From the NCBI RefSeq assembly GCF_000315625.1, contig NW_005434518.1, positions 19,566 to 83,565 on the forward strand: 64,000 bases of DNA. The letters run 5' to 3'. A program made the translations under genes and the position numbers. Position 1 is the stretch's first letter; each line of letters starts with the position of its first letter. Source of the DNA: Guillardia theta CCMP2712 (lineage: Eukaryota; Protista; Cryptophyta). Of the stretch, positions 1-44,127 are shown one piece after another. Below the pieces are notes generated by a model. The model searched no databases and was not told where the DNA came from. It saw nothing but the letters and a program-made list of their open reading frames with translations.

Positions 1-995
1 TGTAATAGCTTGTGAATAGAGTGTGAATGCGCAAGGCCAGACTGACACGCTCCGCCCCCGCATCTTCAGGACGACGCCGTCACGGTGATGGCGGCTATGC
101 GGATGCTGGCGGGGAGTCCGAGAGGGCTCAGTGAAGCGGGGGAGCGAGCTGCGTGTATGGGTAGAGGGGGTAGAGGCTGGGTATGCTTGTGCCACTGCGT
201 AGGGGCGGGAGAGTGGAAGAAGGCCCTGCCTGGCGGAGGCGGGCAGGCCTCGAGGGCTTGGGAGGGAGAAAGGGAGGAGGCTTGGGAGAAGGCACGGGCA
301 AGAAGGCATGAGAGGAGGGGCGAGAGCTTGGGAGTCGGGCAGTGGGAGCTGAAGGGGTCGGGTGAGCGATGGTATCTCTAGTAGTATATCTGGTTTGGTA
401 TCTTTCCTTCCCGGCGTCTCTACCCCAGGCCTCCTCCCCTGCGCCTCCATGAGCAGGTCGGGCAGCGGGTGCGCCTTGAGACATGCGAGCAGCAGGAGGA
501 GGACGCGACGGGATCAAGCTCCGAGACACGAGGCAAAAGCTTGCGGGGGAGGGGAGGAAGAGCGTTCTCAATACTGCAAGGCAGCATGTTTGTATCGTAC
601 GGGCTGTACGGCTACTTGACTTGGTTGACGCATGTCTTGATCCAGAGCGACTCATCCACTGCGACCGTTTGTGCCTCGTGACTCGGGTCACACGGACAAG
701 TAGAGTACTGCCCCTATTGAGATCCGATCTTATCTGAGGAGGCACATTCGTCTTCGAAATCGAGCCCTTTCGTCCCACGAGGCCGCCTGCGGCCACAAAC
801 CCCACACATGTGCGCCCTTCCCGCTTCTCATGGGGGCGTATCTCAAGCCTCCCAAGCCTTTCTCGCACCGCTTCGTACCCGCTGACCTGCTTCAGCCATG
901 ACGCCAGCCGTCCCTGCCTGCCCCTATAAGATCACCAGGACAAGGCCAGAGCCTCGGCTCACGCTTGCCATCCCGCACTCCCTCCCAGCCTGACC

Positions 996-1382
996 ATGAC
1001 CTGCTCTCCTGCTTCTATCGTCCTCGTCGACTCTAGCGTCCGGTGGTACCGCCCCGCCTCCTGCCTCCCTTCAAGCTCCCGGCCCAAGCGGCTCCTCCTC
1101 AGCCCCGACCAGCTCCGCTACCTCGAGCGCCTCCAGGACAAGCAGCGGCTGGCCAGCTCGGAGACCTGTGCGCAAGGGGAGGAGGACGCTGGGGCGGCTC
1201 GCGGCGGCAGGACGTCAGAGTCGAGACAGGCGTCAGCGGCAAGGCCGAGCCTGCTTGACGAGATAGGCAGAGTGCGGGAGAGCAGGGGGGCGACCGCCCG
1301 GAGACAGCGAGACGGGAGGAAGAGGAGGGCCCCGGAGGCGGGGAGAGCGGAGGAGGAGTGTAGCCGCGAGCTTGCGGTGTGA
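996..1382 (+). CDS. Orphan intronless small protein, array copy with A-type N-terminus MTCSPAS (128 aa)
   Basis: ccATG start, TATAA at 925-929, ORF intact in all six full copies, TGTAA motifs just downstream; no recognisable domain. Confidence 0.5.
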   Translation: MTCSPASIVLVDSSVRWYRPASCLPSSSRPKRLLLSPDQLRYLERLQDKQRLASSETCAQGEEDAGAARGGRTSESRQASAARPSLLDEIGRVRESRGATARRQRDGRKRRAPEAGRAEEECSRELAV

Positions 1383-2231
1383 GGGGCACAAGTGCATGTA
1401 ATGTAATAGCTTGTGAATAGAGTGTGAATGCGCAAGGCCAGACTGACACGCTCCGCCCCGTGATGGCGGGGGCTGAGTTGATGATTGTGCTGCACTGTGG
1501 GGGGGCTTGGGGACGGAAGATGGTGCTGCCTGAGAGCAGAGGCTGTTTATGTAGTATGCGTTGGTCTACTCTCAGACTGGGGCATCACGGGAGGGGTACT
1601 AAGTGAGTGTGAGGGGAGCTTTGAGTCTGCCGTTGCATGCTTGTGTCAGCTCGGATCGCTCAGGTGGCTGAGGGAGGCGCTTGGCACGTCGCTTGCCATC
1701 CCGGGCTGGTGATACGTCTAGATGCAAACCCGCCTCTTCTCCAGCTTCTTTCAATCAGAGAACACGCTCATGACTGGGCTGAAGCTGCGGGGTAGGAGGG
1801 GGGGCGCGCACTCTCAGATCGGTCTGCTGTAGACGCTCGCGTGCTGAAGCGCTACAGGTGCCCGACGGCCTCAAGCACCACGACATGCTCGTTCCGATGG
1901 ACAAGCTCGGGATCCATTGCCTGAGGTCGCAACTTCGTTTTCGACCTTTTGAGGCTCGTGACCGGTCACGAGGACCAGACTGGGATTGGAAGCGAAAAGC
2001 CTCAAGTTCGGATCGCCTTGAGGCTGACTTGCATGGCCTCCGCATCGCAATGACCTCTTCTCGTTACCGGGCGGCACCCGCCAAGGAGGCCTAAACCTCA
2101 ACCGCTCAGCCCCAGGCCTACTCTCTCCGTGCCACACTCGTGACTTTTGCTGTACGCCCCCGCAACTAGTCGCATGTAAGCCATCGCACTTGCGACACCC
2201 TCAAGCAAGCTGCTGCCGCCCCCTCCCTCCC

Positions 2232-2630
2232 ATGGTAGCCAAGTCCGTCGTCCTCGTCGAGTCTAGCGTCCGGTGGTACCGCCCCGCCTCCTGCCTCCCT
2301 TCAAGCTCCCGGCCCAAGCGGCTCCTCCTCAGCCCCGACCAGCTCCGCTACCTCGAGCGCCTCCAGGACAAGCAGCGGCTGGCCAGCTCGGAGACCTGTG
2401 CGCAAGGGGAGGAGGACGCTGGGGCGGCTCGCGGCGGCAGGACGTCAGAGTCGAGACAGGCGTCAGCGGCAAGGCCGAGCCTGCTTGACGAGATAGGCAG
2501 AGTGCGGGAGAGCAGGGGGGCGACCGCCCGGAGACAGCGAGACGGGAGGAAGAGGAGGGCCCCGGAGGCGGGGAGAGCGGAGGAGGAGTGTAGCCGCGAG
2601 CTTGCGGTGTGGGGGCAGAAGTGCATGTAA
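2232..2630 (+). CDS. Orphan small protein, array copy with B-type N-terminus MVAKS (132 aa)
   Basis: ccATG from spacer B is in frame with the core ORF. Confidence 0.5.
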   Translation: MVAKSVVLVESSVRWYRPASCLPSSSRPKRLLLSPDQLRYLERLQDKQRLASSETCAQGEEDAGAARGGRTSESRQASAARPSLLDEIGRVRESRGATARRQRDGRKRRAPEAGRAEEECSRELAVWGQKCM

Positions 2631-3624
2631 TGTAATAGCTTGTGAATAGAGTGTGAATGCGCAAGGCCAGACTGACACGCTCCGCCCCCGCATCTTCAGG
2701 ACGACGCCGTCACGGTGATGGCGGCTATGCGGATGCTGGCGGGGAGTCCGAGAGGGCTCAGTGAAGCGGGGGAGCGAGCTGCGTGTATGGGTAGAGGGGG
2801 TAGAGGCTGGGTATGCTTGTGCCACTGCGTAGGGACGGGAGAGTGGAAGAAGGCCCTGCCTGGCGGAGGCGGGCAGGCCTCGAGGGCTTGGGAGGGAGAA
2901 AGGGAGGAGGCTTGGGAGAAGGCACGGGCAAAAAGGCATGAGAGGAGGGGCGAGAGCTTGGGAGTTCGGCATTGGGAGCTGAAGGGTCGGGTGAGCGATG
3001 GTATCTCTAGTAGTATATCTGGTTTGGTATCTTTCCTTCCCGGCGTCTCTACCCCAGGCCTCCTCCCCTGCGTCTCCATGAGCAGGTCGGGCNNNNNNNN
3101 NNNNNNNNNNNNNNNNNNNNNNNNNNNNNNNNNNNNNNNNNNNNNNNNNNNNNNNNNNNNNNNNNNNNNNNNNNNNNNNNNNNNNNNNNNNNNNNNNNNN
3201 NNNNGCAAGGCAGCATGTTTGTATCGTACGGGCTGTACGGCTACTTGACTTGGTTGACGCATGTCTTGATCCAGAGCGACTCATCCACTGCGACCGTTTG
3301 TGCCTCGTGACTCGGGTCACACGGACAAGTAGAGTACTGCCCCTATTGAGATCCGATCTTATCTGAGGAGGCACATCCATCTTCGAAATCGAGCCCTTTC
3401 GTCCCACGAGGCCGCCTGCGGCCACAAACCCCACACATGTGCGCCCTTCCTGCTTCTCATGGGGGCGTATCTCAAGCCTCCCAAGCCTTTCTCGCACCGC
3501 TTCGTACCCGCTGACCTGCTTCAGCCATGACGCCAGCCGTCCCTGCCTGCCCCTATAAGATCACCAGGACAAGGCCAGAGCCTCGGCTCACGCTTGCCAT
3601 CCCGCACTCCCTCCCAGCCTGACC

Positions 3625-4029
3625 ATGACCTGCTCTCCTGCTTCTATCGTCCTCGTCGAGTCTAGCGTCCGGTGGTACCGCCCCGCCTCCTGCCTCCCTT
3701 CAAGCTCCCGGCCCAAGCGGCTCCTCCTCAGCCCCGACCAGCTCCGCTACCTCGAGCGCCTCCAGGACAAGCAGCGGCTGGCCAGCTCGGAGACCTGTGC
3801 GCAAGGGGAGGAGGACGCTGGGGCGGCTCGCGGCGGCAGGACGTCAGAGTCGAGACAGGCGTCAGCGGCAAGGCCGAGCCTGCTTGACGAGATAGGCAGA
3901 GTGCGGGAGAGCAGGGGGGCGACCGCCCGGAGACAGCGAGACGGGAGGAAGAGGAGGGCCCCGGAGGCGGGGAGAGCGGAGGAGGAGTGTAGCCGCGAGC
4001 TTGCGGTGTGGGGGCAGAAGTGCATGTAA
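3625..4029 (+). CDS. Orphan small protein, A-type copy (134 aa)
   Basis: As 996 copy; TGG replaces the TGA stop and extends the ORF by 6 codons. Confidence 0.5.
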   Translation: MTCSPASIVLVESSVRWYRPASCLPSSSRPKRLLLSPDQLRYLERLQDKQRLASSETCAQGEEDAGAARGGRTSESRQASAARPSLLDEIGRVRESRGATARRQRDGRKRRAPEAGRAEEECSRELAVWGQKCM

Positions 4030-5024
4030 TGTAATAGCTTGTGAATAGAGTGTGAATGCGCAAGGCCAGACTGACACGCTCCGCCCCCGCATCTTCAGGA
4101 CGACGCCGTCACGGTGATGGCGGCTATGCGGATGCTGGCGGGGAGTCCGAGAGGGCTCAGTGAAGCGGGGGAGCGAGCTGCGTGTATGGGTAGAGGGGGT
4201 AGAGGCTGGGTATGCTTGTGCCACTGCGTAGGGGCGGGAGAGTGGAAGAAGGCCCTGCCTGGCGGAGGCGGGCAGGCCTCGAGGGCTTGGGAGGGAGAAA
4301 GGGAGGAGGCTTGGGAGAAGGCACGGGCAAGAAGGCATGAGAGGAGGGGCGAGAGCTTGGGAGTCGGGCAGTGGGAGCTGAAGGGGTCGGGTGAGCGATG
4401 GTATCTCTAGTAGTATATCTGGTTTGGTATCTTTCCTTCCCGGCGTCTCTACCCCAGGCCTCCTCCCCTGCGTCTCCATGAGCAGGTCGGGCAGCGGGTG
4501 CGCTTTGAGACATGCGAGCAGCAGGAGGAGGACGCGACGGGATCAAGCTCCGAGACACGAGGCAAAAGCTTGCGGGGGAGGGGAGGAAGAGCGTTCTCAA
4601 TACTGCAAGGCAGCATGTTTGTATCGTACGGGCTGTACGGCTACTTGACTTGGTTGACGCATGTCTTGATCCAGAGCGACTCATCCACTGCGACCGTTTG
4701 TGCCTCGTGACTCGGGTCACACGGACAAGTAGAGTACTGCCCCTATTGAGATCCGATCTTATCTGAGGAGGCACATCCATCTTCGAAATCGAGCCCTTTC
4801 GTCCCACGAGGCCGCCTGCGGCCACAAACCCCACACATGTGCGCCCTTCCCGCTTCTCATGGGGGCGTATCTCAAGCCTCCCAAGCCTTTCTCGCACCGC
4901 TTCGTACCCGCTGACCTGCTTCAGCCATGACGCCAGCCGTCCCTGCCTGCCCCTATAAGATCACCAGGACAAGGCCAGAGCCTCGGCTCACGCTTGCCAT
5001 CCCGCACTCCCTCCCAGCCTGACC

Positions 5025-5429
5025 ATGACCTGCTCTCCTGCTTCTATCGTCCTCGTCGAGTCTAGCGTCCGGTGGTACCGCCCCGCCTCCTGCCTCCCTT
5101 CAAGCTCCCGGCCCAAGCGGCTCCTCCTCAGCCCCGACCAGCTCCGCTACCTCGAGCGCCTCCAGGACAAGCAGCGGCTGGCCAGCTCGGAGACCTGTGC
5201 GCAAGGGGAGGAGGACGCTGGGGCGGCTCGCGGCGGCAGGACGTCAGAGTCGAGACAGGCGTCAGCGGCATGGCCGAGCCTGCTTGACGAGATAGGCAGA
5301 GTGCGGGAGAGCAGGGGGGCGACCGCCCAGAGACAGCGAGACGGGAGGAAGAGGAGGGCCCCGGAGGCGGGGAGAGCGGAGGAAGAGTGTAGCCGCGAGC
5401 TTGCGGTGTGGGGGCAGAAGTGCATGTAA
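5025..5429 (+). CDS. Orphan small protein, A-type copy (134 aa)
   Basis: Intact ORF with two substitutions. Confidence 0.5.
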   Translation: MTCSPASIVLVESSVRWYRPASCLPSSSRPKRLLLSPDQLRYLERLQDKQRLASSETCAQGEEDAGAARGGRTSESRQASAAWPSLLDEIGRVRESRGATAQRQRDGRKRRAPEAGRAEEECSRELAVWGQKCM

Positions 5430-6260
5430 CGTAATAGCTTGTGAATAGAGTGTGAATGCGCAAGGCCAGACTGAAACGCTCCGCCCCATGATGGCGGGGG
5501 CTGAGTTGATGATTGTGCTGTACTTGGGGGGGGGCTGGGGAGATCAAGAAGGTGCTGCCTGAGAGCAGAGGCTGTTTATGTAGTATGCGTTGGTCTACTC
5601 ACAGACTGGGGCATCACGGGAGGGGTACTAAGTGAGTGTGAGGCGAGCTTTGAGTCTGCCGTTGCATGCTTGTGTCAGCTCGGATCGCTCAGGTGGCTGA
5701 GGGAGGCGCTTGGCACGTCGCTTGCCATCCCGGGCTGGTGATACGTCTAGATGCAAACCCGCCTCTTCTCCAGCTTCTTTCAATCAGAGAACACGCTCAT
5801 GACTGGGCTGAAGCTGCGGGGTAGGAGGGGGGGCGCGCACACTCAGATCGGTTTGCTGTAGATGCTCGCGTGCTGAAGCGCTACAGGTGCCCGACGGCCT
5901 CAAGCACCACGACATGCTCGTTCCGATGGACAAGCTCGGGATCCATTGGCTGAGGTCTCAACTTCGTTTGCGACCTTTTGAGGCTCGTGACCGGTCACGA
6001 GGACCAGACTGGGATTGGAAGCGAAAAGCCTCAAGTTCGGATCGCCTTGAGGCTGACTTGCATGGCCTCCGCATCGCAATGACCTCTTCTCGTTACCGGG
6101 CGGCACCCGCCAAGGAGGCCTAAACCTCAACCGCTCAGCCCCAGGCCTACTCTCTCCGTGCCACACTCGTGACTTTTGCTGTACGCCCCCGCAACTAGTC
6201 GCATGTAAGCCATCGCACTTGCGACACCCTCAAGCAAGCTGCTGCCGCCCCCTCCCTCCC

Positions 6261-6659
6261 ATGGTAGCCAAGTCCATCGTCCTCGTCGAGTCTAGCGTCC
6301 GGTGGTACCGCCCCGCCTCCTGCCTCCCTTCAAGCTCCCGGCCCAAGCGGCTCCTCCTCAGCCCCGACCAGCTCCGCTACCTCGAGCGCCTCCAGGACAA
6401 GCAGCGGCTGGCCAGCTCGGAGACCTGTGCGCAAGGGGAGGAGGACGCTGGGGCGGCTCGCGGAGGCAGGACGTCAGAGTCGAGACAGGCGTCAGCGGCA
6501 AGGCCGAGCCTGCTTGACGAGATAGGCAGAGTGCGGGAGAGCAGGGGGGCGACCGCCCGGAGACAGCGAGACGGGAGGAAGAGGAGGGCCCCGGAGGCGG
6601 GGAGAGCGGAGGAGGAGTGTAGCCGCGAGCTTGCGGTGTGCGGGCAGAAGTGCATGTAA
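6261..6659 (+). CDS. Orphan small protein, B-type copy (132 aa)
   Basis: Intact ORF. Confidence 0.5.
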   Translation: MVAKSIVLVESSVRWYRPASCLPSSSRPKRLLLSPDQLRYLERLQDKQRLASSETCAQGEEDAGAARGGRTSESRQASAARPSLLDEIGRVRESRGATARRQRDGRKRRAPEAGRAEEECSRELAVCGQKCM

Positions 6660-7491
6660 TGTAATAGCTTGTGAATAGAGTGTGAATGCACAAGGCCAGA
6701 CTGAAACGCTCCGCCCCATGATGGCGGGGGCTGAGTTGATGATTGTGCTGTACTTGGGGGGGGGCTTGGGGATTGAGGATGGTGCTGCCTGAGAGCAGAG
6801 GCTGTTTATGTAGTATGCGTTGATCTATTCATAGACTGGGGCATCACGGGAGGGGTACTAAGTGAGTGTGAGGCGAGCTTTGAGTCTGCCGTTGCATGCT
6901 TGTGTCAGCTCGGATCGCTCAGGTGGCTGAGGGAGGCGCTTGGCACGTCGCTTGCCATCCCGGGCTGGTGATACGTCTAGATGCAAACCCGCCTCTTCTC
7001 CAGCTTCTTTCAATCAGAGAACACGCTCATGACTGGGCTGAAGCTGCGGGGTAGAAGGGGGGGCGCGCACACTCAGATCGGTTTATTGTAGACGCTCGCG
7101 TGCTGAAGCGCTACAGGTGCCCGACGGCCTCAAGCACCACGACATGCTCGTTCCGATGGACAAGCTCGGGATCCATTACCTGAGGTCTCAACTTCGTTTG
7201 CGACCTTTTGAGGCTCGTGACCGGTCACGAGGACCAGACTGGGATTGGAAGCGAAAAGCCTCAAGTTCGGATCGCCTTGAGGCTGACTTGCATGGCCTCC
7301 GCATCGCAATGACCTCTTCTCGTTACCGGGCGGCACCCGCCAAGGAGGCCTAAACCTCAACCGCTCAGCCCCAGGCCTACTCTCTCCGTGCCACACTCGT
7401 GACTTTTGCCTGTACGCCCCCGCAACTAGTCGCATGTAAGCCATCGCACTTGCGACACCCTCAAGCAAGCTGCTGCCGCCCCCTCCCTCCC

Positions 7492-7872
7492 ATGGTAGCC
7501 AAGTCCATCGTCCTCGTCGAGTCTAGCGTCCGGTGGTACCGCCCCGCCTCCTGCCTCCCTTCAAGCTCCCGGCCCAAGCGGCTCCTCCTCAGCCCCGACC
7601 AGCTCCGCTACCTCGAGCGCCTCCAGGACAAGCAGCGGCTGGCCAGCTCGGAGACCTGTGCGCAAGGGGAGGAGGACGCTGGGGCGGCTCGCGGCGGCAG
7701 GACGTCAGAGTCGAGACAGGCGTCAGCGGCATGGCCGAGCCTGCTTGACGAGATAGGCAGAGTGCGGGAGAGCAGGGGGGCGACCGCCCGGAGACAGCGA
7801 GACGGGAGGAAGAGGAGGGCCCCGGAGGCGGGGAGAGCGGAGGAGGAGTGTAGCCGCGAGCTTGCGGTGTGA
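7492..7872 (+). CDS. Orphan small protein, terminal B-type copy (126 aa)
   Basis: Intact ORF with the TGA stop allele. Confidence 0.5.
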   Translation: MVAKSIVLVESSVRWYRPASCLPSSSRPKRLLLSPDQLRYLERLQDKQRLASSETCAQGEEDAGAARGGRTSESRQASAAWPSLLDEIGRVRESRGATARRQRDGRKRRAPEAGRAEEECSRELAV

Positions 7873-8923
7873 GGGGCAGAAGTGCATGTAATGTAATAGC
7901 TTGTGAACAGAGTGTGAATGCGCATGGCTAGGATTGGAGATGATTTTCATTGTCCACGTTGATTGTGACGAGATCGGTCAGTGCAAGTGATCTGCTGTCT
8001 CAGCAAAGTTGCCAGTTTGGTTACAGCCATTTCAATCAGTAGTATGAGTCAAGGATGACCTTTAATGTTTGAGTAAAGGATGTGTTTCAGACTGACATAC
8101 TTCCTGTCGGAACAACTCAAAGTCAAAAGGATTGACCTTGGAAGACTGAGATGATCCCACCTCTCAACTGATGACGACATTCAGAGTGTCAACTGCCTGA
8201 GTGACATCGGCTCTAGTCAATCATGACTACTGAGCTAGCCTGACGACGGTCACTGCACTACTGACTGGTTATTGACTGAAAGTACCTGGGCAGAGTGCCG
8301 GTTACATATCTCTACCAGACCGTTACAAAAAGACCGGTAGTTACCCACACCGGTACAGTCACTTGACCCCACCCCTCAACTAATAAGGAAATTTGGACCA
8401 CCATTCAGTCATAGGGAGGGGTCATGGGGTCATGGGGGTCGTGGCCTTCCAGTGGGGTTCCCTGCCTACGCGCTTCCAGGTATGGCGGGAAAGGGAGAAG
8501 GCGATGAAGAATGGAATGGGTGGTAGCGACGAAGAGAGACAGAGAAGACAAAGGGATAAGAACAGGCTGGATGAAATGAAAGAAATGATAAGCTCAAGTC
8601 CCAACTGAAATGTTGAATTTCTGCTTTTGTAGCTTCAATAAGAGCCTCCCACAAACAGGGCGAGAGAATTGAAAATGATGGTGTGAGGTAGGTTGTTGGA
8701 CAGCCTCTGCATGGAAGTCGATGCCAGCAACTGGATATGATCGTGTTGTGCTATGCTTGCATTTTGCCGTCGTACATGTCAGAAGTAGTAAGGACTTGCA
8801 AAGCTCCAGCTTATAGTTTGTTGGAGCGCTACTGTGCATTTAGAGAGCTTGGTGGAATGGAGTGTGCGTAGACTTGTGCTAATGCTGTGTTCTGCATACA
8901 GAAGAAAATCTTCAAGCGCAGAA

Positions 8924-11900
8924 ATGGGCAAGAAAAATTGGGAGAGAAATTCAAAATTTCCAGAGACAACTAAATCAGAAGCTCCCAAAACAAGATCAGT
9001 CTTCTCGAATGAGAGGACTCAAAACCACGAGCTTGAAAGCAAGAAGGAGTCAAAACCCAGTAAGACTAGAGGTTCTAGCCAAACACATCTTTCTGCAAAG
9101 AAGAACTCAATAGGTGCGTCCGTTGACTTGAGGAGGTGGTAATCACCGTCATGCGCAGATGAGGAGGGTAATGCAAGGAGAGATTCATTGAGGAAGACGC
9201 GAAATAGCGCCAGCAGCAGCAAAAGCACGTCTGAGCCTGACCCTGGGTGAGAATGATTCAATACATGTGAAGGAGACCTTTGCTTATTTAGTCTCAGGTT
9301 AACGGACGGTGCGAACAAAGAAGAACTGACGGAAGTGATAACAGAAGTAGTGTATCTGTCTCCGCACGATGAAGAATCAGACAAGGACTTCGAGTTTCTG
9401 ATTGAAGATGATCAGAAGGAATCAGGATCTCGCACAAAGTACCCGCCATGGCCCTACTTTGTGAACTGTAGAGTTGAAGCCCTGTATGATGATGGGATTT
9501 GGTATCAGGGAATACTCAAAGATGGACCCAAAGGCACTGGCAGCCACGAGGAGAAGCTCTTTCAGATTATCTTCGATGACGGTGAAGAAATTTGGACGGA
9601 GCTTCCAGCTGATGATATTAGAATGGTGGAGGCTGTTCCAAAGAAAGGGCTCAAAGTGTTTGTGTATCTTGATGCAAGTAGGTCCTCCAAGAAGTCGGCC
9701 ATCCTTTATCAGAGCCATGACAACTTGCATGTCAAGGTTGGAGGAAAGAGCTGCTCGCTCACATCCTTTTGTGCTATGGATGATGCATCGCAACCTCAAC
9801 CGCATCCTTATGATGCTGTCTGGGTGGCACAATCCCCTGAGCTGTCGCTGCTTCAATACTTCCAAAAAGCCTTCGGTGGGGAATGCGAGGCTGTGCAAGG
9901 AGAACAAAGTATTCCGGATTCTTCTGCTCAACCAAAGCTGATTCCTGGTCAAGAAGCTCCAATGTCAAAACGGAGCCTCTTGCCGAAAGATTGGAAAGTA
10001 TTGGTCAAGGATGATAATAGCCATTACAACTACATCGCTCCAGACGGAACAATCTTTTCGAACCTGCGCAGTGCTTTGACGTATGCTGGTAAGCATGAAG
10101 CAGATGAAATCTCAGCATCGGAGCCTCGAATGAAGAGCAGTGCAGAAGAGCAGACTGAAAGTATTTCCAACTCTCAATCGTTGAACAGTAAGGAAGCCAA
10201 AAGAGACCAGAATCAAAGGGATACGAGTGAGCACGAAAAGAATATCAAGTTTGAGACTGAAGTGAAGAGAAAAGGCAAGGCCAAGAATGTAGATTCAAAA
10301 GATTCAGACAAATCTGCTCAAGATGATACAAGAGATGATATGGAGGTTGTAACACGATCTTTGCGAAAGAGAACAAAAGGAACACCTTCCAACGAATCTT
10401 CTTCCAAGAATGTACTTGAAGTACAATCAGCTCCTGCAACCCAGTCCTTCCAAGCCACCAGTTCTGAAAATGCTGTCCAGTCAGAAGAGACAGTCAGACC
10501 TCAAGAAGATAGACCTGCTTCAGACGCCATACCCCAGACGAAGGTGATTCTGTTCGAAGAAGACGTGGATGTCGAAGAGATGGACAAGTCGTCGGCAGCA
10601 GACGGGAAGGATTCTGAGCACCAGTCGGATCTAGAAGACGAAAGCGAATTTGAAGGAGTCATTGAAGAAATAGAAGCTGAAGATGATGCTGGCCAAGGTC
10701 AGGAAGGAAGTTTCATCGAAGAGGTGGAAGTAGACGAGAGCTCTGAAACCTCGACCTTGGCCGTCGAGCAAGGAGCTTCTGAAGACACCCAAGAAAACGA
10801 CAAGTCGGTAGAAGACGATTCTGTTACCAAGGGTACGGCTGCCAACCAGCGGCAGTTCAATGTCGGAGATTTTGTCTCTGTAGAAGATTGCACAAAGAGA
10901 TGGTGTACGTGCGAAATTTTGAAGAAAATTGACGGGAAGGTGAAAGTACATTACATCAATTGGAGTAGCGACTGGGATGAATGGATTGACGTGACGTCAG
11001 ACAGGATACAGGAAAGCGATGTGATTATCGACAATGGAAAGAGAAAGTCTTCCAAAATATCCAAAGAATCTGCTGCCATAAAAAAGCCAAAGCCAAAAAC
11101 AATCAAACCTAGGATAGACAGGATTCCCAACTTTGAAGAGAAACAGTCATGGGTATGTTCAGTAGACATGAAGAAGGGATTTGCCAACGGGAACAGATAC
11201 ATCGGAGAACAGGTTCGCATCCGAGACAGGACACATGGTCTTTTGCGTGGTGCAATCGATGACTTTGACGAGCGAGGGTTTCACGTGGCTATCGAGGGTG
11301 ACATGGAAAACCGCTGGATTCGTTTGCCAGATCCAGATGTCGACTTTCTACAGATAGTAGCAGCACGGCCCGAAGTAAACCAGTATCCAAGGAGGACGAA
11401 CCGCCTTTCCTTTGTATGTACAGGCTGTGAGAAACAGTTTCAGACAAAGCAAGGTCTGCACTTCCATATTTCTCGCTCAGAAGAGTGCCAGAATGTATTT
11501 TATAACCTGAACATCCCACTTCCTCCTGGAATCGCATGGAAAATTTCCAAGAAGAACAACCAAAAGAGCAGAACCAGCACCAGTCTTGCATCGGCATCAT
11601 CAGGACCTTTGCACTCAAAACCCAGTGAGTTGCACAAAAGCGCCTTCAAGCAAAAGAAGAGGAAAAGTGACCTGGAGATTTCGGACATTGAGAAACGACA
11701 AAAGGTTTTGTCAAGTGAATCATTCGCATTCGTCTCAAGTCCTCAGATCAAAGACAACTCTTCATCCAGGGCGAGTAACGGACGGTCCATCGCTTCTTTG
11801 GTCATAGCAGAAGTTCTCAGAAGGAGGGCCACAGGTGAATGTCATGATGTTTTTCAGCATCAAGTTATGTGCGTTGAAGGCGAAATGATACCGAACAACT

Positions 11901-34437: not shown

Positions 34438-36016
34438 TCTTCACAATGGCGCTCCTTCGATCCTTCAACGCGGCGATACTTCAGTTGGAGAACATAATCT
34501 AGTCTACGAGAAGCTTGTAAACCTGTCAACCAGAGCAAGATTCAGCTGTGCATCACACAAGTCTGAGCTAGGATTATTCATCATCAATCACCCGCTTCCT
34601 CTTTGTAATGTTCTCCTTTCTCTTCTGCATTTTTCTCCACTTCCTCCCCATACTCACTCGCTACCCCACATTTCTTCGCTGCTTTACTGCCGAGCGCCGG
34701 AGCACCTGCCCCCGCTTCAACCGTGTAAATCACACCCCCGGCAATAAATAGTCCACCCGGTCCTAATACCTGATATACCCCACCCTTTTAGCATCGATTA
34801 GAGGACCCCACACCCACCTGAGCAGTGTCGGGACACCCTCACCCCCACATTCAAGGAGTTACTACCCCACCCCTAAGTTACTCCACAACACTCCTCTTGT
34901 GCAGATCATAACCCCACCCTGGCTAGGATGTTTGTTCACCCCTACCCCAATTTTTCCATATTGTCACCCCACAAAATCACTGCAACAAGAAATTATCAAC
35001 CCCTGTGGCTATGATGAAGTACCCACCCCCGTATTCCCGTCGATGTGGGGGAAACTGATAATGTTTTAATTTTAAAATAGTTTTCGGACCTAGAGGCGAT
35101 GACCACCGAAACCCGAACCAACCTTCTGCCTAACATTTGATATTTACAGACAAAATTTGGAGTATATTTACTACATGTTTCAAGAAAGTGCACCCCTCGG
35201 TGCTGGTGTCACTCCGTACAAGGTACATTTTAGCCAATAATATGAAGCCTCACGAACTTCTATCATAGGATTTGAAATTTCTATTTGATAACAAGCAGAA
35301 TTGGAACGTCGTATTCATTTTTGAGCTTCATGGACGAAGGGAGGGAAGGAGGGGTGGATTTTGATAGGAGAATGGACGGGTACATCTGGCAGTCGGAGCT
35401 CGTTGTTTCTTCGGCATTTCTTTTTTTTGTCATCAAAGAGCCGAACTAACTCGTTTCAAATCTTGAAGCAGAATTTCAAAAGGAGCTTTATCACGGTGCA
35501 AAAGTCTTCCGATCGGTATGCAGGGAGGGGTGGTAGACGGTAGATGAGTGAGTAGGGGTAATCCAAGGTGTTGGTGGAGAGATAAAGCTCATACCGGATG
35601 CACAACTCGGACATGGCAACAGCGGCAGCAACAGCGGGTGATCGACGACAGGTGGGATCACGAGATTCTACCAACTTGCCTTGAAGGATCACCTTTGACA
35701 TGATGAGAGGAGTTGAAGACGTTGGAGTAGATCGAATGATCAGTGTTCAACAACACCAGCCAGGAAACAGCATCTGGTCCGTGCATGTAAAGTCATAGAA
35801 ATTGATACGCAGATGTGAAAAGACACCTACAAAGGTGCCAGCAAGATAAAAACAACCACAAGGACTTGCTTTTGATGAAGCAGGAGAATTGAAATCGAAA
35901 GATCAATAAAAGGGAAAGTGCAATGCAAAGAGGAAAGTCAAAACTTCGTGAGTATACTTTATTGTCGTAATCGACTCAGACAAAGAAAACTCCGATTCAC
36001 AGGCCTTCTTGCTCAT

Positions 36017-37441
36017 CTACACCCCCACCCTCCCCAGCAGCTTCACGATGTGCTCGGACGCTTGCCTCCGCACAGCCTTTACTTGCTCCTCACCGCCAAC
36101 GAGCCATCGGTCCCTTGGCAAGATGCGGCTGTAGTTGTCCGAGATGGTGCTCGCAAGCATCGCATAGCCAAGCATCAACTCCCTGCTCACCTTGTGCATC
36201 GCCTTCCGGCGCCTCCGGGTAAGAATGGTGAGACCGCTGTTGGACATGTCGGCCAGAAGGTGTGGGGCGTAGTCGAGGCGAGGACGCACACAAAGCTTGA
36301 CTCTGGCAGCAAAATTCTCGTAAGACACGCTGGTGTGATTGCAGAGTCTGATGAAATCCAGAAAGCTAAGGAAGACATCAACATGCAGGGAAGTGCGGCG
36401 GAGACTGGGCCTCAGGTCCCCGACGGCGTCTCGGAGGATGAGGGAGAACATGGCCGAGAAGGGCACGTCGTCGTCGGGCAGCAACTGCAGCATGTCTGCA
36501 AGCACCCCGGTGCTCAGCCCCACCCCTTCTGCCTCCCACAGGCCCAGGAACTCCGCCCTCCGAAACAGCTCCCTCCATGGGCACTGGCAACCGTTTTGGA
36601 CGGCCTCCCTGAAGCCCCTCTCTGCAATGAGGTCGAGCATCTGGCGCATCATGTCCTGGTACTCGGCGCTTGCCCACGAGAACAGCCTCATGTACTTGGG
36701 CACTAGCACCTTCCTCCTGTACAAGTGCATGCGCAGCTCCTCCTCGCCGGTCAAGACAAGGGCCGGGCAGGCCAAGAACGCTCCTTTGTCCTGGATGACG
36801 TCGGCAAGGACGCGGTCTGCGAGGTAGTCGGCAGCCTCATCTCGGATAGAGGCAAGCTGCTCATCATCCATGTCCAGGTCAAGCAGGTGGTACCACCAAC
36901 CCCTGTCCTCGCTGGCTGACCTGTAGATGTAGTAGCACAACACCAGGGCAGGGAAGACGGCGTTGAGGCCGTCGAGCTGAAGGTCGTTGAGCATGGACAG
37001 GCCGGTGCTCCTGCACCGTCGGCGCATCACAACGATAGGAGCTTCTTCCTGCATATACTCGCTCGCTAGGCATCCAACCAGCACGGCCGCGCACGCCACG
37101 ATGGGCGGAATGAGGTCCTGAGGGACGATGGGAGCGAGCATAGCGGACAGCTCAGAGACTAAGATGGAGGAGTTCGTGTCATAGCAGCTGTTGTCGTTGT
37201 TGATCGAAAGCATCATGCTAAAGTACAGGTGGTAGCGTGTTTCCTCCACGTCCTCTATCGCCCTCGCCTCCCCATTGCGCATCCCACTGGAGACCATGGT
37301 GTAACAGCCCCTCACGGAAGACAAGATGAGCCTGCCAGCGAGGGACTTGATCCTACAGCTGGCTCCTTGCAAGCTGCGCATGTGCTTGTCCATGACGCAC
37401 ATGATGAACTCTTGTTCGTTCCTGAACTTCGTCACGGGCAT
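36017..37441 (-). CDS. Intronless orphan protein, 474 aa, array copy 1
   Basis: Long ORF with globular composition, AAAAATG start context, AATAAA ~55 nt after the stop (35958-35963). Confidence 0.8.
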   Translation of the reverse strand: MPVTKFRNEQEFIMCVMDKHMRSLQGASCRIKSLAGRLILSSVRGCYTMVSSGMRNGEARAIEDVEETRYHLYFSMMLSINNDNSCYDTNSSILVSELSAMLAPIVPQDLIPPIVACAAVLVGCLASEYMQEEAPIVVMRRRCRSTGLSMLNDLQLDGLNAVFPALVLCYYIYRSASEDRGWWYHLLDLDMDDEQLASIRDEAADYLADRVLADVIQDKGAFLACPALVLTGEEELRMHLYRRKVLVPKYMRLFSWASAEYQDMMRQMLDLIAERGFREAVQNGCQCPWRELFRRAEFLGLWEAEGVGLSTGVLADMLQLLPDDDVPFSAMFSLILRDAVGDLRPSLRRTSLHVDVFLSFLDFIRLCNHTSVSYENFAARVKLCVRPRLDYAPHLLADMSNSGLTILTRRRRKAMHKVSRELMLGYAMLASTISDNYSRILPRDRWLVGGEEQVKAVRRQASEHIVKLLGRVGV

Positions 37442-38674
37442 TTTTGTTTGCCCACCGCCCCGACCGCCATCTTATGAAGGCCTCTCGGACCCACCCACCT
37501 CCAATTCCCACAAACAAGGCTCGAGTCAGGGGTACAGGGGTACAGGGGTCCTGCGCCTCCCACAAACCATGGAGAAACATGGCTGGGGAGCAAGATAGTC
37601 AGATGAGATTGAAGATGTTTGATATCAGATGGTTTAACTTACATGCTTGTCTAAGTTTTCATTGCTCATATCTAACGACTGAGTATTTCAACACATGCTT
37701 ACTTCACATACAGACGATTATCAAGTGAAATGGGTATGTAATGAAAGATTTACACGTCTTGTTGTCCATCTTTCTTAGTTATTGCCTCCGTCGTTAGATC
37801 ATAGAATTGAGGACGTTTATGTTGTGGGTTAGTATTCATGCACCTCAGATCACTTGTGATGTTTCATTAAGACCTCACGATAACATGTTTCAAAAATAAT
37901 TTCAAACTCAAAAATAACATGAATCTTCGCAGCGGGAAATGACTGCACACTCCCAGACCCAACGCGAGAAAGTGCAGGGCCCCTGAGCCCTGCTCCATGG
38001 CTAAGAAGAGAGGAACAGGAAAGGCAGGAGCAGGACGTGGCAAGCATCGCTCTCCTTGCTTCAATCTCCCTCGACCAGCTCGTCGAGCGCAGCCATAGCT
38101 CTTTTCCAGTACAGACCAGGTGCTGCTTGCCCCAAGGTAGCTACCGTATCCTTCTCTCGTTCGATGACCTCCTGCTCAGGGCCTTGAGTATGCTCAACCT
38201 CTCCCCGCAAGTATCCTCACCTTTAGCGTCCTCCTCAGCCTGGAAGAGTGCGGGCAGTAGACTGTCTCCTCCTCCTGCTGATCAAGGCCATTGTGCCTGA
38301 AGTCTATGTCTGTGGACGTACCAACTTGAGGGCATACGAGTGACTTGATGAGAGGAGTTGAAGNNNNNNNNNNNNNNNNNNNNNNNNNNNNNNNNNNNNN
38401 NNNNNNNNNNNNNNNNNNNNNNNNNNNNNNNNNNNNNNNNNNNNNNNNNNNNNNNNNNNNNNNATACGCAGATGTGAAAAGACACCTACAAAGGTGCCAG
38501 CAAGATAAAAACAACCACAAGGACTTGCTTTTGATGAAGCAGGAGAATTGAAATCGAAAGATCAATAAAAGGGAAAGTGCAATGCAAAGAGGAAAGTCAA
38601 AACTTCGTGAGTATACTTATTGTCGTTATCGACTCAGACAAAGAAAACTCCGATTCACAGGCCTTCTTGCTCAT

Positions 38675-40099
38675 CTACACCCCCACCCTCCCCAGCAGCT
38701 TCACGATGTGCTCGGACGCTTGCCTCCGCACAGCCTTTACTTGCTCCTCACCGCCAACGAGCCATCGGTCCCTTGGCAAGATGCGGCTGTAGTTGTCCGA
38801 GATGGTGCTCGCAAGCATCGCATAGCTAAGCATCAACTCCCTGCTCACCTTGTGCATCGCCTTCCGGCGCCTCCGGGTAAGAATGGTGAGACCGCTGTTG
38901 GACATGTCGGCCAGAAGGTGTGGGGCGTAGTCGAGGCGAGGACGCACACAAAGCTTGACTCTGGCAGCAAAATTCTCGTAAGACACGCTGGTGTGATTGC
39001 AGAGTCTGATGAAATCCAGAAAGCTAAGGAAGACATCAACATGCAGGGAAGTGCGGCGGAGACTGGGCCTCAGGTCCCCGACGGCGTCTCGGAGGATGAG
39101 GGAGAACATGGCCGAGAAGGGCACGTCGTCGTCGGGCAGCAACTGCAGCATGTCTGCAAGCACCCCGGTGCTCAGCCCCACCCCTTCTGCCTCCCACAGG
39201 CCCAGGAACTCCGCCCTCCGAAACAGCTCCCTCCATGGGCACTGGCAACCGTTTTGGACGGCCTCCCTGAAGCCCCTCTCTGCAATGAGGTCGAGCATCT
39301 GGCGCATCATGTCCTGGTACTCGGCGCTTGCCCACGAGAACAGCCTCATGTACTTGGGCACTAGCACCTTCCTCCTGTACAAGTGCATGCGCAGCTCCTC
39401 CTCGCCGGTCAAGACAAGGGCCGGGCAGGCCAAGAACGCTCCTTTGTCCTGGATGACGTCGGCAAGGACGCGGTCTGCGAGGTAGTCGGCAGCCTCATCT
39501 CGGATAGAGGCAAGCTGCTCATCATCCATGTCCAGGTCAAGCAGGTGGTACCACCAACCCCTGTCCTCGCTGGCTGACCTGTAGATGTAGTAGCACAACA
39601 CCAGGGCAGGGAAGACGGCGTTGAGGCCGTCGAGCTGAAGGTCGTTGAGCATGGACAGGCCGGTGCTCCTGCACCGTCGGCGCATCACAACGATAGGAGC
39701 TTCTTCCTGCATATACTCGCTCGCTAGGCATCCAACCAGCACGGCCGCGCACGCCACGATGGGCGGAATGAGGTCCTGAGGGACGATGGGAGCGAGCATA
39801 GCGGACAGCTCAGAGACTAAGATGGAGGAGTTCGTGTCATAGCAGCTGTTGTCGTTGTTAATCGAAAGCATCATGCTAAAGTACAGGTGGTAGCGTGTTT
39901 CCTCCACGTCCTCTATCGCCCTCGCCTCCCCATTGCGCATCCCACTGGAGACCATGGTGTAACAGCCCCTCACGGAAGACAAGATGAGCCTGCCCGCGAG
40001 AGACTTGATCCTACAGCTGGCTCCTTGCAAGCTGCGCATGTGCTTGTCCATGACGCACATGATGAACTCTTGTTCGTTCCTGAACTTCGTCACGGGCAT
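38675..40099 (-). CDS. Intronless orphan protein, 474 aa, copy 2 (one G>S change)
   Basis: Same ORF as copy 1. Confidence 0.8.
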   Translation of the reverse strand: MPVTKFRNEQEFIMCVMDKHMRSLQGASCRIKSLAGRLILSSVRGCYTMVSSGMRNGEARAIEDVEETRYHLYFSMMLSINNDNSCYDTNSSILVSELSAMLAPIVPQDLIPPIVACAAVLVGCLASEYMQEEAPIVVMRRRCRSTGLSMLNDLQLDGLNAVFPALVLCYYIYRSASEDRGWWYHLLDLDMDDEQLASIRDEAADYLADRVLADVIQDKGAFLACPALVLTGEEELRMHLYRRKVLVPKYMRLFSWASAEYQDMMRQMLDLIAERGFREAVQNGCQCPWRELFRRAEFLGLWEAEGVGLSTGVLADMLQLLPDDDVPFSAMFSLILRDAVGDLRPSLRRTSLHVDVFLSFLDFIRLCNHTSVSYENFAARVKLCVRPRLDYAPHLLADMSNSGLTILTRRRRKAMHKVSRELMLSYAMLASTISDNYSRILPRDRWLVGGEEQVKAVRRQASEHIVKLLGRVGV

Positions 40100-40344
40100 T
40101 TTTGTTTGCCCCCCACCCGACCGCCATCTTAAGAAGGCCTCTCGGACCCACCCACCTCCAATTCCCACAAACAAGGGTCGAGTCAGGGGTACAGGGGTAC
40201 AGGGGTCCTGCGCCTCCCACAAACCATCGAGAACATGGCTGGGGAGCAAGATAGTCAGATGAGATTGAAGATGTTTGATATCAGATGGTTTAACTTACAT
40301 GCTTGTCTAAGTTTTCATTGCTCATATCTAACGACTGAGTATTT

Positions 40345-40500
40345 CAACACATGCTTACTTCACATACAGACGATTATCAAGTGAAATGAGTATGTAATGA
40401 AAGATTTACACGTCTTGTTGTCCAACACATGCTTACTTCACATACAGACGATTATCAAGTGAAATGGGTATGTAATGAAAGATTTACACGTCTTGTTGTC
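40345..40500. repeat. 78-bp internal tandem duplication upstream of the 474-aa gene (double in units 2 and 3, single in unit 1)
   Basis: CAACACATGCTTACTTCAC... at 40345 and 40423. Confidence 0.9.
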
Positions 40501-40794
40501 CATCTTTCTTAGTTATTGCATCCATCGTTAGATCATGGAATTGAGGACGTATATGTTGTGGGTCAGTATTCATGCACCTCAGATCACTTGTGATGTTTCA
40601 TTAAGACCTCACGATAACATGTTTCAAAAATAATTTCAAACTCAAAAATAACATGAATCTTCGCAGCGGGAAATGACTGCACACTCCCAGACCCAACGCG
40701 AGAAAGTGCAGGGCCCCTGAGCCCTGCTCCATGGCTAAGAAGAGAGGAACAGGAGAGGCAGGAGCAGGACGTGGCGAGCATCGCTCTCCTTGCT

Positions 40795-41030
40795 TCAATC
40801 TCCCTCGACCAACTCGTCGAGCGCAGCCATAGCTCTTTTCCAGTACAGACCAGGTGCTGCCTGCCCTAAGGTAGCTACCGTGTCCTTCTCTCGTTCGATG
40901 ACCTCCTGCTCAGGGCCTTGAGTATGCTCAACCTCTCCCCGCAAGTATCCTCACCTTTAGCGTCCTCCTCAGCCTGGAAGAGTGCGGGCAGTAGACTGTC
41001 TCCTCCTCCTGCTGATCAAGGCCATTGTGC
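40795..41030 (-). pseudogene. Two orphaned terminal exons carried in each repeat unit, probably from the right-hand neighbour gene
   Basis: Exon 41030-40955, GTGAG..CAG intron 40954-40906, exon 40905-40795 ending in TGA: HNGLDQQEEE..RTLK|EVIEREKD..ELVEGD*. Confidence 0.55.
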
Positions 41031-41400
41031 CTGAAGTCTATGTCTGTGGACGTACCAACTTGCCTTGAAGGATCACCTTTGACATGATGAGAGGAGTTGA
41101 AGACGTTGGAGTAGATCGAATGATCAGTGTTCAACAACACCAGCCAGGAAACAGCATCTGGTCCGTGCATGTAAAGTCATAGAAATTGATACGCAGATGT
41201 GAAAAGACACCTACAAAGGTGCCAGCAAGATAAAAACAACCACAAGGACTTGCTTTTGATGAAGCAGGAGAATTGAAATCGAAAGATCAATAAAAGGGAA
41301 AGTGCAATGCAAAGAGGAAAGTCAAAACTTCGTGAGTATACTTTATTGTCGTAATCGACTCAGACAAAGAAAACTCCGATCCACAGGCCTTCTTGCTCAT

Positions 41401-42825
41401 CTACACCCCCACCCTCCCCAGCAGCTTCACGATGTGCTCGGACGCTTGCCTCCGCACAGCCTTTACTTGCTCCTCACCGCCAACGAGCCATCGGTCCCTT
41501 GGCAAGATGCGGCTGTAGTTGTCCGAGATGGTGCTCGCAAGCATCGCATAGCCAAGCATCAACTCCCTGCTCACCTTGTGCATCGCCTTCCGGCGCCTCC
41601 GGGTAAGAATGGTGAGACCGCTGTTGGACATGTCGGCCAGAAGGTGTGGGGCGTAGTCGAGGCGAGGACGCACACAAAGCTTGACTCTGGCAGCAAAATT
41701 CTCGTAAGACACGCTGGTGTGATTGCAGAGTCTGATGAAATCCAGAAAGCTAAGGAAGACATCAACATGCAGGGAAGTGCGGCGGAGACTGGGCCTCAGG
41801 TCCCCGACGGCGTCTCGGAGGATGAGGGAGAACATGGCCGAGAAGGGCACGTCGTCGTCGGGCAGCAACTGCAGCATGTCTGCAAGCACCCCGGTGCTCA
41901 GCCCCACCCCTTCTGCCTCCCACAGGCCCAGGAACTCCGCCCTCCGAAACAGCTCCCTCCATGGGCACTGGCAACCGTTTTGGACGGCCTCCCTGAAGCC
42001 CCTCTCTGCAATGAGGTCGAGCATCTGGCGCATCATGTCCTGGTACTCGGCGCTTGCCCACGAGAACAGCCTCATGTACTTGGGCACTAGCACCTTCCTC
42101 CTGTACAAGTGCATGCGCAGCTCCTCCTCGCCGGTCAAGACAAGGGCCGGGCAGGCCAAGAACGCTCCTTTGTCCTGGATGACGTCGGCAAGGACGCGGT
42201 CTGCGAGGTAGTCGGCAGCCTCATCTCGGATAGAGGCAAGCTGCTCATCATCCATGTCCAGGTCAAGCAGGTGGTACCACCAACCCCTGTCCTCGCTGGC
42301 TGACCTGTAGATGTAGTAGCACAACACCAGGGCAGGGAAGACGGCGTTGAGGCCGTCGAGCTGAAGGTCGTTGAGCATGGACAGGCCGGTGCTCCTGCAC
42401 CGTCGGCGCATCACAACGATAGGAGCTTCTTCCTGCATATACTCGCTCGCTAGGCATCCAACCAGCACGGCCGCGCACGCCACGATGGGCGGAATGAGGT
42501 CCTGAGGGACGATGGGAGCGAGCATAGCGGACAGCTCAGAGACTAAGATGGAGGAGTTCGTGTCATAGCAGCTGTTGTCGTTGTTGATCGAAAGCATCAT
42601 GCTAAAGTACAGGTGGTAGCGTGTTTCCTCCACGTCCTCTATCGCCCTCGCCTCCCCATTGCGCATCCCACTGGAGACCATGGTGTAACAGCCCCTCACG
42701 GAAGACAAGATGAGCCTGCCAGCGAGGGACTTGATCCTACAGCTGGCTCCTTGCAAGCTGCGCATGTGCTTGTCCATGACGCACATGATGAACTCTTGTT
42801 CGTTCCTGAACTTCGTCACGGGCAT
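41401..42825 (-). CDS. Intronless orphan protein, 474 aa, copy 3
   Basis: Protein identical to copy 1. Confidence 0.8.
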   Translation of the reverse strand: MPVTKFRNEQEFIMCVMDKHMRSLQGASCRIKSLAGRLILSSVRGCYTMVSSGMRNGEARAIEDVEETRYHLYFSMMLSINNDNSCYDTNSSILVSELSAMLAPIVPQDLIPPIVACAAVLVGCLASEYMQEEAPIVVMRRRCRSTGLSMLNDLQLDGLNAVFPALVLCYYIYRSASEDRGWWYHLLDLDMDDEQLASIRDEAADYLADRVLADVIQDKGAFLACPALVLTGEEELRMHLYRRKVLVPKYMRLFSWASAEYQDMMRQMLDLIAERGFREAVQNGCQCPWRELFRRAEFLGLWEAEGVGLSTGVLADMLQLLPDDDVPFSAMFSLILRDAVGDLRPSLRRTSLHVDVFLSFLDFIRLCNHTSVSYENFAARVKLCVRPRLDYAPHLLADMSNSGLTILTRRRRKAMHKVSRELMLGYAMLASTISDNYSRILPRDRWLVGGEEQVKAVRRQASEHIVKLLGRVGV

Positions 42826-44127
42826 TTTTGTTTGCCCACCGCCCCGACCGCCATCTTAAGAAGGCCTCTCGGACCCACCCACCTCCAATTCCCACAAACA
42901 AGGGTCGAGTCAGGGGTACAGGGGTACAGGGGTCCTGCGCCTCCCACAAACCATCGAGAACATGGCTGGGGAGCAAGATAGTCAGATGAGATTGAAGATG
43001 TTTGATATCAGATGGTTTAACTTACATGCTTGTCTAAGTTTTCATTGCTCATCTCTAACGACTGAGTATTTCAACACATGCTTACTTCACATACAGACGA
43101 TTATCAAGTGAAATGGGTATGTAATGAAAGATTTACACGTCTTGTTGTCCAACACATGCTTACTTCACATACAGACGATTATCAAGTGAAATGGGTATGT
43201 AATGAAAGATTTACACGTCGTATTGTCCATCTTTCTTAGTTATTGCCTCCATCGTTAGATCATGGAATTGAGGGCGTATATGTTGTGGGTCAGTATTCAT
43301 GCACCTCAGAAAGCTTGTGATGTTTCATTAAGACCTCACGATAACATGTTTCAAAAATAATTTCAAACTCAAAAATAACATGAATCTTCGCAGCGGGAAA
43401 TGACTGCACACTCCCAGACCCAACGCGAGAAAGTGCAGGGCCCCTGAGCCCTGCTCCATGGCTAAGAAGAGAGGAACAGGAGAGGCAGGAGCAGGACGTG
43501 GCGAGCATCGCTCTCCTTGCTTCAATCTCCCTCGACCAACTCGTCGAGCGCAGCCATAGCTCTTTTCCAGTACAGACCAGGTGCTGCCTGCCCTAAGGTA
43601 GCTACCGTGTCCTTCTCTCGTTCGATGACCTCCTGCTCAGGGCCTTGAGTATGCTCAACCTCTCCCCGCAAGTATCCTCACCTTTAGCGTCCTCCTCAGC
43701 CTGGAAGAGTGCGGGCAGTAGACTGTCTCCTCCTCCTGCTGATCAAGGCCATTGTGCCTGAAGTCTATGTCTGTGGACGTACCAACTTGCCTTGAAGGAT
43801 CACCTTTGACATGATGAGAGGAGTTGAAGACGTTGGAGTAGATCGAATGATCAGTGTTCAACAACACCAGCCAGGAAACAGCATCTGGTCCGTGCATGTA
43901 AAGTCATAGAAATTGATACGCAGATGTGAAAAGACACCTACAAAGGTGCCAGCAAGATAAAAACAACCACAAGGACTTGCTTTTGATGAAGCAGGAGAAT
44001 TGAAATCGAAAGATCAATAAAAGGGAAAGTGCAATGCAAAGAGGAAAGTCAAAACTTCGTGAGTATACTTTATTGTCGTAATCGACTCAGACAAAGAAAA
44101 CTCCGATCCACAGGCCTTCTTGCTCAT

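Follow-up and report, generated by a model that had tools for sequence, protein, structure and literature searches.

A GC-rich tandem array of Guillardia theta joins a uniform core with a possibly coding orphan reading frame to two diverged classes of spacer

Results

A nine-unit array built from one core and two spacers

The DNA considered here is a 64,000-nucleotide stretch of the genome of the cryptophyte Guillardia theta CCMP2712 (contig NW_005434518.1, positions 19,566 to 83,565), to which we refer as the window. Its 5' end is occupied by a tandem array in which copies of a short core, each containing an open reading frame (ORF), are separated by spacers of two kinds, A and B. An initial annotation of the window had described near-identical cores with intervening spacers in the order A-B-A-A-B-B, and BLAST comparisons in which a single core and a single copy of each spacer were matched to the window bear this out. 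Six full cores are present; core length is 441 bp and the cores are 98.2-100% identical. The spacers measure 958 bp (A; copies 98.5-100% identical) and 789 bp (B; copies 97.7-100% identical). Their BLAST matches cover 60-1017, 2690-3646 and 4089-5046 for A, and 1461-2246, 5488-6276 and 6718-7507 for B.

The tandem array is real, and it extends beyond the 5' end of the window. A stretch of scaffold JH993120.1 (GCA_000315625.1), designated L001, adds 9 kb upstream (window position 1 corresponds to L001 9006), which brings the sequence at hand to 73 kb. The array begins about 3.3 kb 5' of the window and spans L001 5667-16936, equivalent to window positions -3339 to 7931, or 11.3 kb. According to BLAST searches against L001, it comprises nine cores and the spacer series A'-B-B-A-B-A-A-B-B, where A' is a partial spacer that starts at position 404 of A (A404). 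The units are arranged head to tail with a period of 1,230 or 1,400 bp and share the core, and all four combinations of upstream and downstream spacers occur around the cores (Table 1). No other copy of the core was found within the 73 kb, and BLAST detected no further unit-like sequence at window positions 8,000-64,000 except for a 37-nt low-complexity match. The whole array forms a sharply bounded island with a GC content of 58-70%, as opposed to 40-49% on either side. In the last unit, core copy 9, the similarity stops at about core position 424-431, after which an unrelated flank with the lower GC content follows.

Core variants are distributed across both types of unit

If the final 20 nt of copy 9, which have diverged, are set aside, any two cores differ at 0-7 of 441 sites. 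The A spacers differ from each other at 2-9 sites and the B spacers at 16-20 of 789, except for the first two B copies, which differ at 5; the cores are consequently more uniform than the spacers. Three core variants are informative with respect to the history of the array. An arginine-to-tryptophan change is present in core copies 7 and 9, which have an A and a B spacer upstream, respectively; a 1-nt insertion that creates a TGA codon is found in core copies 2, 4 and 9; and a tryptophan-to-cysteine change is present in core copies 1 and 8. For each of these variants, all four gametes in combination with the spacer type are represented. Not a single difference is fixed between A-type and B-type cores in the core interior, and the last variable core site is the only one that tracks the downstream spacer.

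As these variants cut across the unit types, the units have exchanged sequence, either through unequal crossing-over or through gene conversion, and this amounts to concerted evolution. The recombination or gene conversion between cores that the initial annotation envisaged is thereby supported. The array behaves like an ordinary tandem multigene family under concerted evolution, and the irregular order of A and B is an expected by-product of crossovers between cores. Biased gene conversion may in addition contribute to the high GC content of the array.

Spacers A and B retain four co-linear islands

The two spacers had initially been described as largely dissimilar. This is correct in that most of their length cannot be aligned, but A and B also possess four co-linear islands that are conserved well above chance. 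The best local alignment between them (A601-641 vs. B482-520) has 41 columns with 33 identities and reaches a score of 38, compared with a null of 23 +/- 2.4 and none of 300 shuffles attaining this value; a second island (A117-174 vs. B13-74) scores 47 compared with a null of 19.7 +/- 2.9. The remaining two islands are TGATGGCGG, located directly after the core, and CTCCCTCCCA, located directly before the ATG codon. The B version of the 41-nt element holds a perfect 18-nt palindrome, CTCGTGACCGGTCACGAG (5984-6001), which within the window is confined to the B spacers and is therefore not a general motif of this DNA.

We regard A and B as what are in all likelihood strongly diverged versions of one ancestral spacer, rather than as unrelated cassettes. 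The four islands may represent cis-elements or mere remnants of this common origin; the 41-nt palindromic element is a candidate promoter element, and the TATAAG sequence of spacer A copy 3 (4954-4959, 66-71 nt upstream of the ATG at 5025), which is not found in B, might function as a TATA box or another promoter element. A scan for promoters and terminators returned no result; its models are bacterial while the host is a eukaryote. Neither array flank exhibits similarity to spacer A or B, and a local origin of the spacers can consequently not be shown; likewise, no similarity was found between the left or the right flank and the opposite side of the array.

Several further observations concern the spacers. 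The partial spacer A' at the start of the array lacks 48 bp (A620-667; L001:5880-5890) that include most of the 41-nt palindromic element, and apart from this deletion it differs from the full A copies by 2-3 substitutions. In the 5' half of spacer A, a frame of 97-98 codons starts from a shared ATGGCGG (window positions 4114-4410, 85-381, and from 2715 onward); it displays a moderate GC3-type periodicity, with a phase statistic of up to 0.17, and has no Pfam match. Its counterpart in B ends after about 23 codons at a run of G of variable length. In spacer B (window 5488-6260), the GC periodicity by codon phase is low and does not exceed 0.078 in segments of 402 nt, with a higher value in a short stretch at about 5590-5890. 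A gene inside this spacer finds no support, and its open frames are without Pfam matches. A minus-strand frame of 246-267 codons in spacer A was considered and rejected: this length is reached in 5-7% of shuffles, no Pfam match was obtained, and the one GC-phase signal of spacer A is out of phase with this frame.

The reading frame of the core

The core ORF comprises 128-134 codons and is rich in Arg, Ser, Ala and Glu. As the initial annotation had noted, both spacers end in an in-frame ccATG, and this is the case at all six starts in the window (Table 1); the N-termini supplied by A and B differ by 5-7 residues only. The limits of the uniform core lie close to those of the ORF, and identity extends from 22 nt (A) or 16 nt (B) past the A of the ATG codon to 57 nt past the TAA codon. 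All nine copies preserve the frame with its start and stop. The sole indel, the 1-nt insertion present in three of them, leads immediately to a TGA codon located eight codons early (128 instead of 134 codons).

The composition of the ORF resembles that of coding DNA. The GC content at its three codon positions is 0.64/0.61/0.83 (Fisher p = 3e-5), and every third of the ORF shows this pattern. Its phase statistic is 0.20, whereas none of the 128 spacer and right-flank segments goes beyond 0.172; elsewhere in the window, the Pfam-supported genes and the long ORFs that were tested are among the sequences with values above 0.19. Of the six frames, that of the ORF scores best under a G. theta codon model, with a margin of 0.11 bit per codon; the training set of this model consisted of seven ORFs located in the window or in L001, four of them supported by Pfam and three chosen solely by length. 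Two different spacers that both deliver a correctly phased start had been taken to argue that the ORF is real. It is true that each spacer contains exactly one in-frame ATG, but as an argument this is weak given a joint chance of about 3.7%. Considered together, these properties suggest that the ORF may be translated.

Two public gene models touch the core. The 197-amino-acid model GUITHDRAFT_119734 (L001:10001-11026, window 996-2021) starts at an A-type ATG and splices past the stop region into spacer B, and a 403-amino-acid model (L001:14030-16285, window 5025-7280) also starts at an A-type ATG and has a range that reaches into the second following core. Both probably arose as artefacts when genes were predicted ab initio across a repeat. 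An array of small RNA genes (5S, snRNA, spliced leader) was also considered for this locus and dismissed, given that positions 1-9000 yielded no Rfam match at E <= 1 and ARAGORN predicted no tRNA.

Support for the array in independent data

Spacer A copy 2 is interrupted by an assembly gap. Its left edge corresponds to A404 and its right edge to A517, and the number of N equals the number of bases missing relative to the intact A copies; the two sides of the gap are hence co-linear and in register. The gap is separated by 463 nt from the stop codon that precedes it and by 421 nt from the ATG that follows, and it lies outside every copy of the ORF; long minus-strand frames that read through the N run are artefacts. 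Extra whole units may be hidden in this gap. It begins at the very spacer position, A404, at which the array as a whole begins, and this may be the reason why the assembler broke there.

Contigs from two sequencing runs were aligned to a reference consisting of A, core and B: X1, a DNA run from 2021 with the same species label, and X7, a run labelled as a freshwater metagenome. The junction from the core to A is present in contigs of both runs, and that from B to the core in X7. Both also possess a loose end at A404 whose letters are identical to the left flank of the scaffold and which consequently marks the left edge of the array. In X1 this edge is the sole loose end, which argues against the core being a dispersed repeat. 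The word depths in X1 (193 for the 5' part of A, 266-311 for its 3' part, 234-256 for B and 492 for the core) come close to the 3:4:5:9 ratio of the assembly and hint at one or two A units beyond those assembled.

Some features of the metagenomic runs stand apart. X7 contains two contexts that are absent from the scaffold, with loose ends at 4164 and 5232, and this freshwater-labelled run carries the exact left junction of the array. Sequences with at least 95% identity to window positions 4089-6276 are present in runs X7, X8 and X10-X15, whose labels read freshwater, lake or runoff metagenome. Guillardia theta is a marine species. A close relative, cross-contamination or a sample of brackish water could account for these matches under non-marine labels.

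Neighbouring genes and a second amplification

The left neighbour of the array is a Methyltransf_21 gene, and its right neighbour is an ORF of 911 codons. Elsewhere in the window, a second and unrelated amplification (35900-45300) consists of three to four copies of a unit of about 2.7 kb. Each of these units contains a minus-strand ORF of 474 codons with strong GC3 periodicity and no Pfam match, and a duplicated motif of 78 bp follows each of them (78-bp x2 repeats at 40345-40502 and 43072-43229).

Table 1. Components of the array, its assembly gap and the 41-nt element in window coordinates.
Feature	Window position	Strand	Details	Method
Core copy 3	1-57	+	3' end only (full copy: L001 8623-9062)	BLAST
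Spacer A copy 1	58-1017	+	ends with ccATG start at 996	BLAST
Core copy 4	1018-1458	+	ORF 996-1382, 128 codons; 1-nt insertion leads to early TGA	
Spacer B copy 3 (counted over the entire array)	1459-2247	+	ccATG start at 2232	BLAST
Core copy 5	2248-2687	+	ORF from ATG 2232 to TAA 2630; identical to core copy 6	
Spacer A copy 2	2688-3646	+	broken by assembly gap; A-type ccATG start at 3625	BLAST
Assembly gap	3093-3204	.	112 N within spacer A, replacing A405-516 (112 bases)	
Core copy 6	3647-4086	+	ORF 3625-4029, 134 codons	
Spacer A copy 3	4087-5046	+	A-type ccATG start at 5025	BLAST
41-nt element, A version	4689-4729	.	imperfect palindrome CGTGAC..GTCACA, 296-336 nt upstream of ATG	
Core copy 7	5047-5486	+	ORF 5025-5429; three private changes plus the Arg-to-Trp change in common with copy 9	
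Spacer B copy 4	5487-6276	+	ccATG start at 6261	BLAST
41-nt element, B version	5969-6007	.	254-292 nt upstream of ATG	
Core copy 8	6277-6716	+	ORF from ATG 6261 to 6659	
Spacer B copy 5	6717-7507	+	ccATG start at 7492	BLAST
Core copy 9	7508-7931	+	last unit; ORF 7492-7872 with early TGA	

Discussion

The data reported here lend themselves to an interpretation to which we assign a probability of roughly 0.55. According to this interpretation, the locus is a nuclear, GC-rich head-to-tail array of 11.3 kb with nine units in the assembly, in each of which one of two spacers leads into a core of 441 bp, and these spacers would have diverged from one ancestor to such an extent that only four short co-linear islands can still be aligned. 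Repeated unequal crossing-over and gene conversion between the cores would keep both unit types 98-100% alike, and the same exchanges would yield the irregular order of A and B as a by-product. Slightly more likely than not, the ORF within the core would be, or would until recently have been, a species-restricted protein gene with a very low level of expression in culture. We consider the chances that the core ORF is a functional protein gene to be about one half.

A number of findings weigh against a coding function of the core, and most of them also speak for its main competitor, a non-coding GC-rich macrosatellite with units of 1.23 and 1.40 kb that would owe its ORF to the chance effects of composition and its periodicity either to purine-rich triplet-like runs or to the remains of an old, dead coding sequence. 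After block shuffling, about 80% of the units contain an open frame of at least 134 codons, and the core itself is open in three frames; the length of the ORF and its intact frame therefore carry little weight as evidence for coding. The margin that the codon model grants to the ORF is equalled by some segments of spacer A. No homologue was found, and in this respect the orphan status proposed in the initial annotation stands: a word-based search of 5.8 billion clustered proteins retrieved GUITHDRAFT_119734, the scaffold's own model, as its sole match, and an exhaustive HMMER search of 1.84 billion cluster representatives likewise found no relative other than this model. Pfam gave no match for the ORF or for 12 further open frames on both strands of core and spacers; no relative was present in the ESM atlas, where the recognition score of the ORF falls below the usual range of known families; and protein-pattern scans of metagenome and viral contigs detected no relative of the ORF. 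There was also no match to an exact 30-mer in metagenome contigs, the exact product of neither the A-type nor the B-type ORF is recorded in public assemblies, and no paper was found for the locus tag. The changes among the copies, seven nonsynonymous and three synonymous, correspond to an omega of about 0.8 and look neutral; omega values of 0.2 or below are rejected at p of about 0.04, although with ten events only, weak constraint is compatible with the data. Purifying selection is hence not what this estimate points to. An AlphaFold2 model computed from the single sequence contains two long helices and has a pLDDT of 56.6, a fold of low confidence. RNA is nearly absent: an RNA-seq run of 764 million letters contains five reads on the units, four of which lie in the core rather than in the spacers (p of about 0.05) and at most one of which touches the 3' end of B, and X9, a presumed RNA run, provides a single 241-nt contig of low depth, located in the core. 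Four of the five reads come from pairs whose first mate is on the plus strand, which would make them antisense RNA if the library is dUTP-stranded. Set against this body of evidence are the GC3 periodicity that is in phase with the ORF in all of its thirds and surpasses that of every spacer and flank segment, the preservation of the frame in nine of nine copies, the single in-frame ATG offered by both spacers, the location of four of the five RNA reads and of the X9 contig in the core, and the fact that homogenisation ends near the limits of the ORF although the spacers appear to be homologous. We therefore look upon the macrosatellite as a possible explanation that deserves to be taken seriously, yet as a less probable one than an array with a once or still coding core.

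The initial annotation had gone further and had viewed the spacers as interchangeable promoter and N-terminus modules, dealt to the cores by a device through which A-type and B-type genes would be regulated differently and dosage or expression would be tuned. It is in keeping with this idea that all four pairings of upstream and downstream spacers occur, that A and B both provide an in-frame ATG, that they have a palindromic element in common at a similar distance upstream, and that TATAAG (-66 to -71) is present in A alone, so that the promoter types could differ; the msp gene classes of Leishmania provide a precedent (PMC6006689). However, no RNA read defines a transcript start in either spacer, the five reads and the single 241-nt contig being all that could be mapped and the 3' end of B being touched by one read at most; the two N-termini differ by a mere 5-7 residues; and random unequal crossovers produce an irregular order without any function. 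The proposal has thus not been borne out, and we deem it improbable. A composite scenario, in which a young gene restricted to Guillardia, de novo or acquired, has been amplified as a GC-rich mini-macrosatellite, with conversion confined to the coding core and identical proteins placed under two regulatory regimes, is unlikely too, but less so; the diverged flanks would then retain the 41-nt element and the island past the stop, and the two regimes would become visible only under stress or life-cycle conditions that were not sampled. Very improbable, finally, is the derivation of the array from a mobile element, with the core as the terminal repeat of a transposon, or the creation of its alternation or copy number by faulty assembly of repeats. 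One might be led to this suspicion by the gap inside the array and its left edge at A404, where the array also starts, by the one or two additional A units hinted at by the X1 depth, and by the sharply bounded GC island with its unrelated flanks; moreover, the order of A and B comes from the Sanger assembly alone, which the contigs of X1 and X7, all shorter than 500 bp, are unable to confirm, and this is a further point against our preferred interpretation. Nevertheless, no ORF of core or spacers has a Pfam match, and hence no transposase or reverse-transcriptase domain was detected; there is no tRNA or Rfam match; the only loose end in X1 is the left edge of the array and the core does not occur in many contexts; the junctions recur in two independent data sets; and the units carry distinct private variants, which is unlike what one sees in a collapsed or invented repeat.

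The array calls to mind three known systems. In the dual 5S rDNA of fishes, and in the somatic and oocyte 5S genes of Xenopus, a conserved core is combined with two dissimilar classes of spacers (PMC3123226). As in these systems, the short core of the Guillardia array is repeated head to tail, its two spacer classes each vary little within themselves, and uniformity is attributed to unequal crossing-over or gene conversion. In contrast to 5S rDNA, the Guillardia core has no Rfam match and contains an ORF of protein type, its copy number is tiny, and its spacer classes are interleaved in one array of nine units instead of being separate in the genome. The tandem msp (GP63) array of Leishmania, in which gene classes are distinguished by the sequence of their 3' UTR (untranslated region) and are differentially expressed (PMC6006689), is the closest precedent among protists for the same protein under different regulation; whereas msp encodes a known and highly expressed protease, the Guillardia ORF is an orphan with an expression near zero and with no demonstrated differential use of A and B. 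The human D4Z4/DUX4 macrosatellite is described as having a GC content of 71%, with DUX4 being usually silenced in normal tissues (PMC5687341). Together with the TAF11-like macrosatellites, it resembles the Guillardia array, whose units have a GC content of 59-67%, in consisting of tandem units in the kilobase range with one ORF each (PMC5687341; PMC3018141). The human units reported there are larger (3-3.4 kb), reach up to about 150 copies and encode known ORF families (homeobox, TAF11), unlike those of Guillardia, and an organisation with two spacers is not among the macrosatellite features that these two sources list. The Guillardia array is set apart from all three precedents by the interleaving of spacer classes within nine units, by its orphan ORF, and by the fact that no expression has been demonstrated.

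Whether or not the core is coding, the locus adds no new mechanism. If the ORF is not translated, the array is a small macrosatellite and the public models of 197 and 403 amino acids are probably artefacts. If it is translated, the locus would be a compact natural example of a cryptophyte orphan gene that concerted evolution has both maintained and amplified, and the array would by its very structure allow one coding sequence to be compared in two flanking contexts. The locus could then be used to study the promoter elements of Guillardia, which are poorly known.

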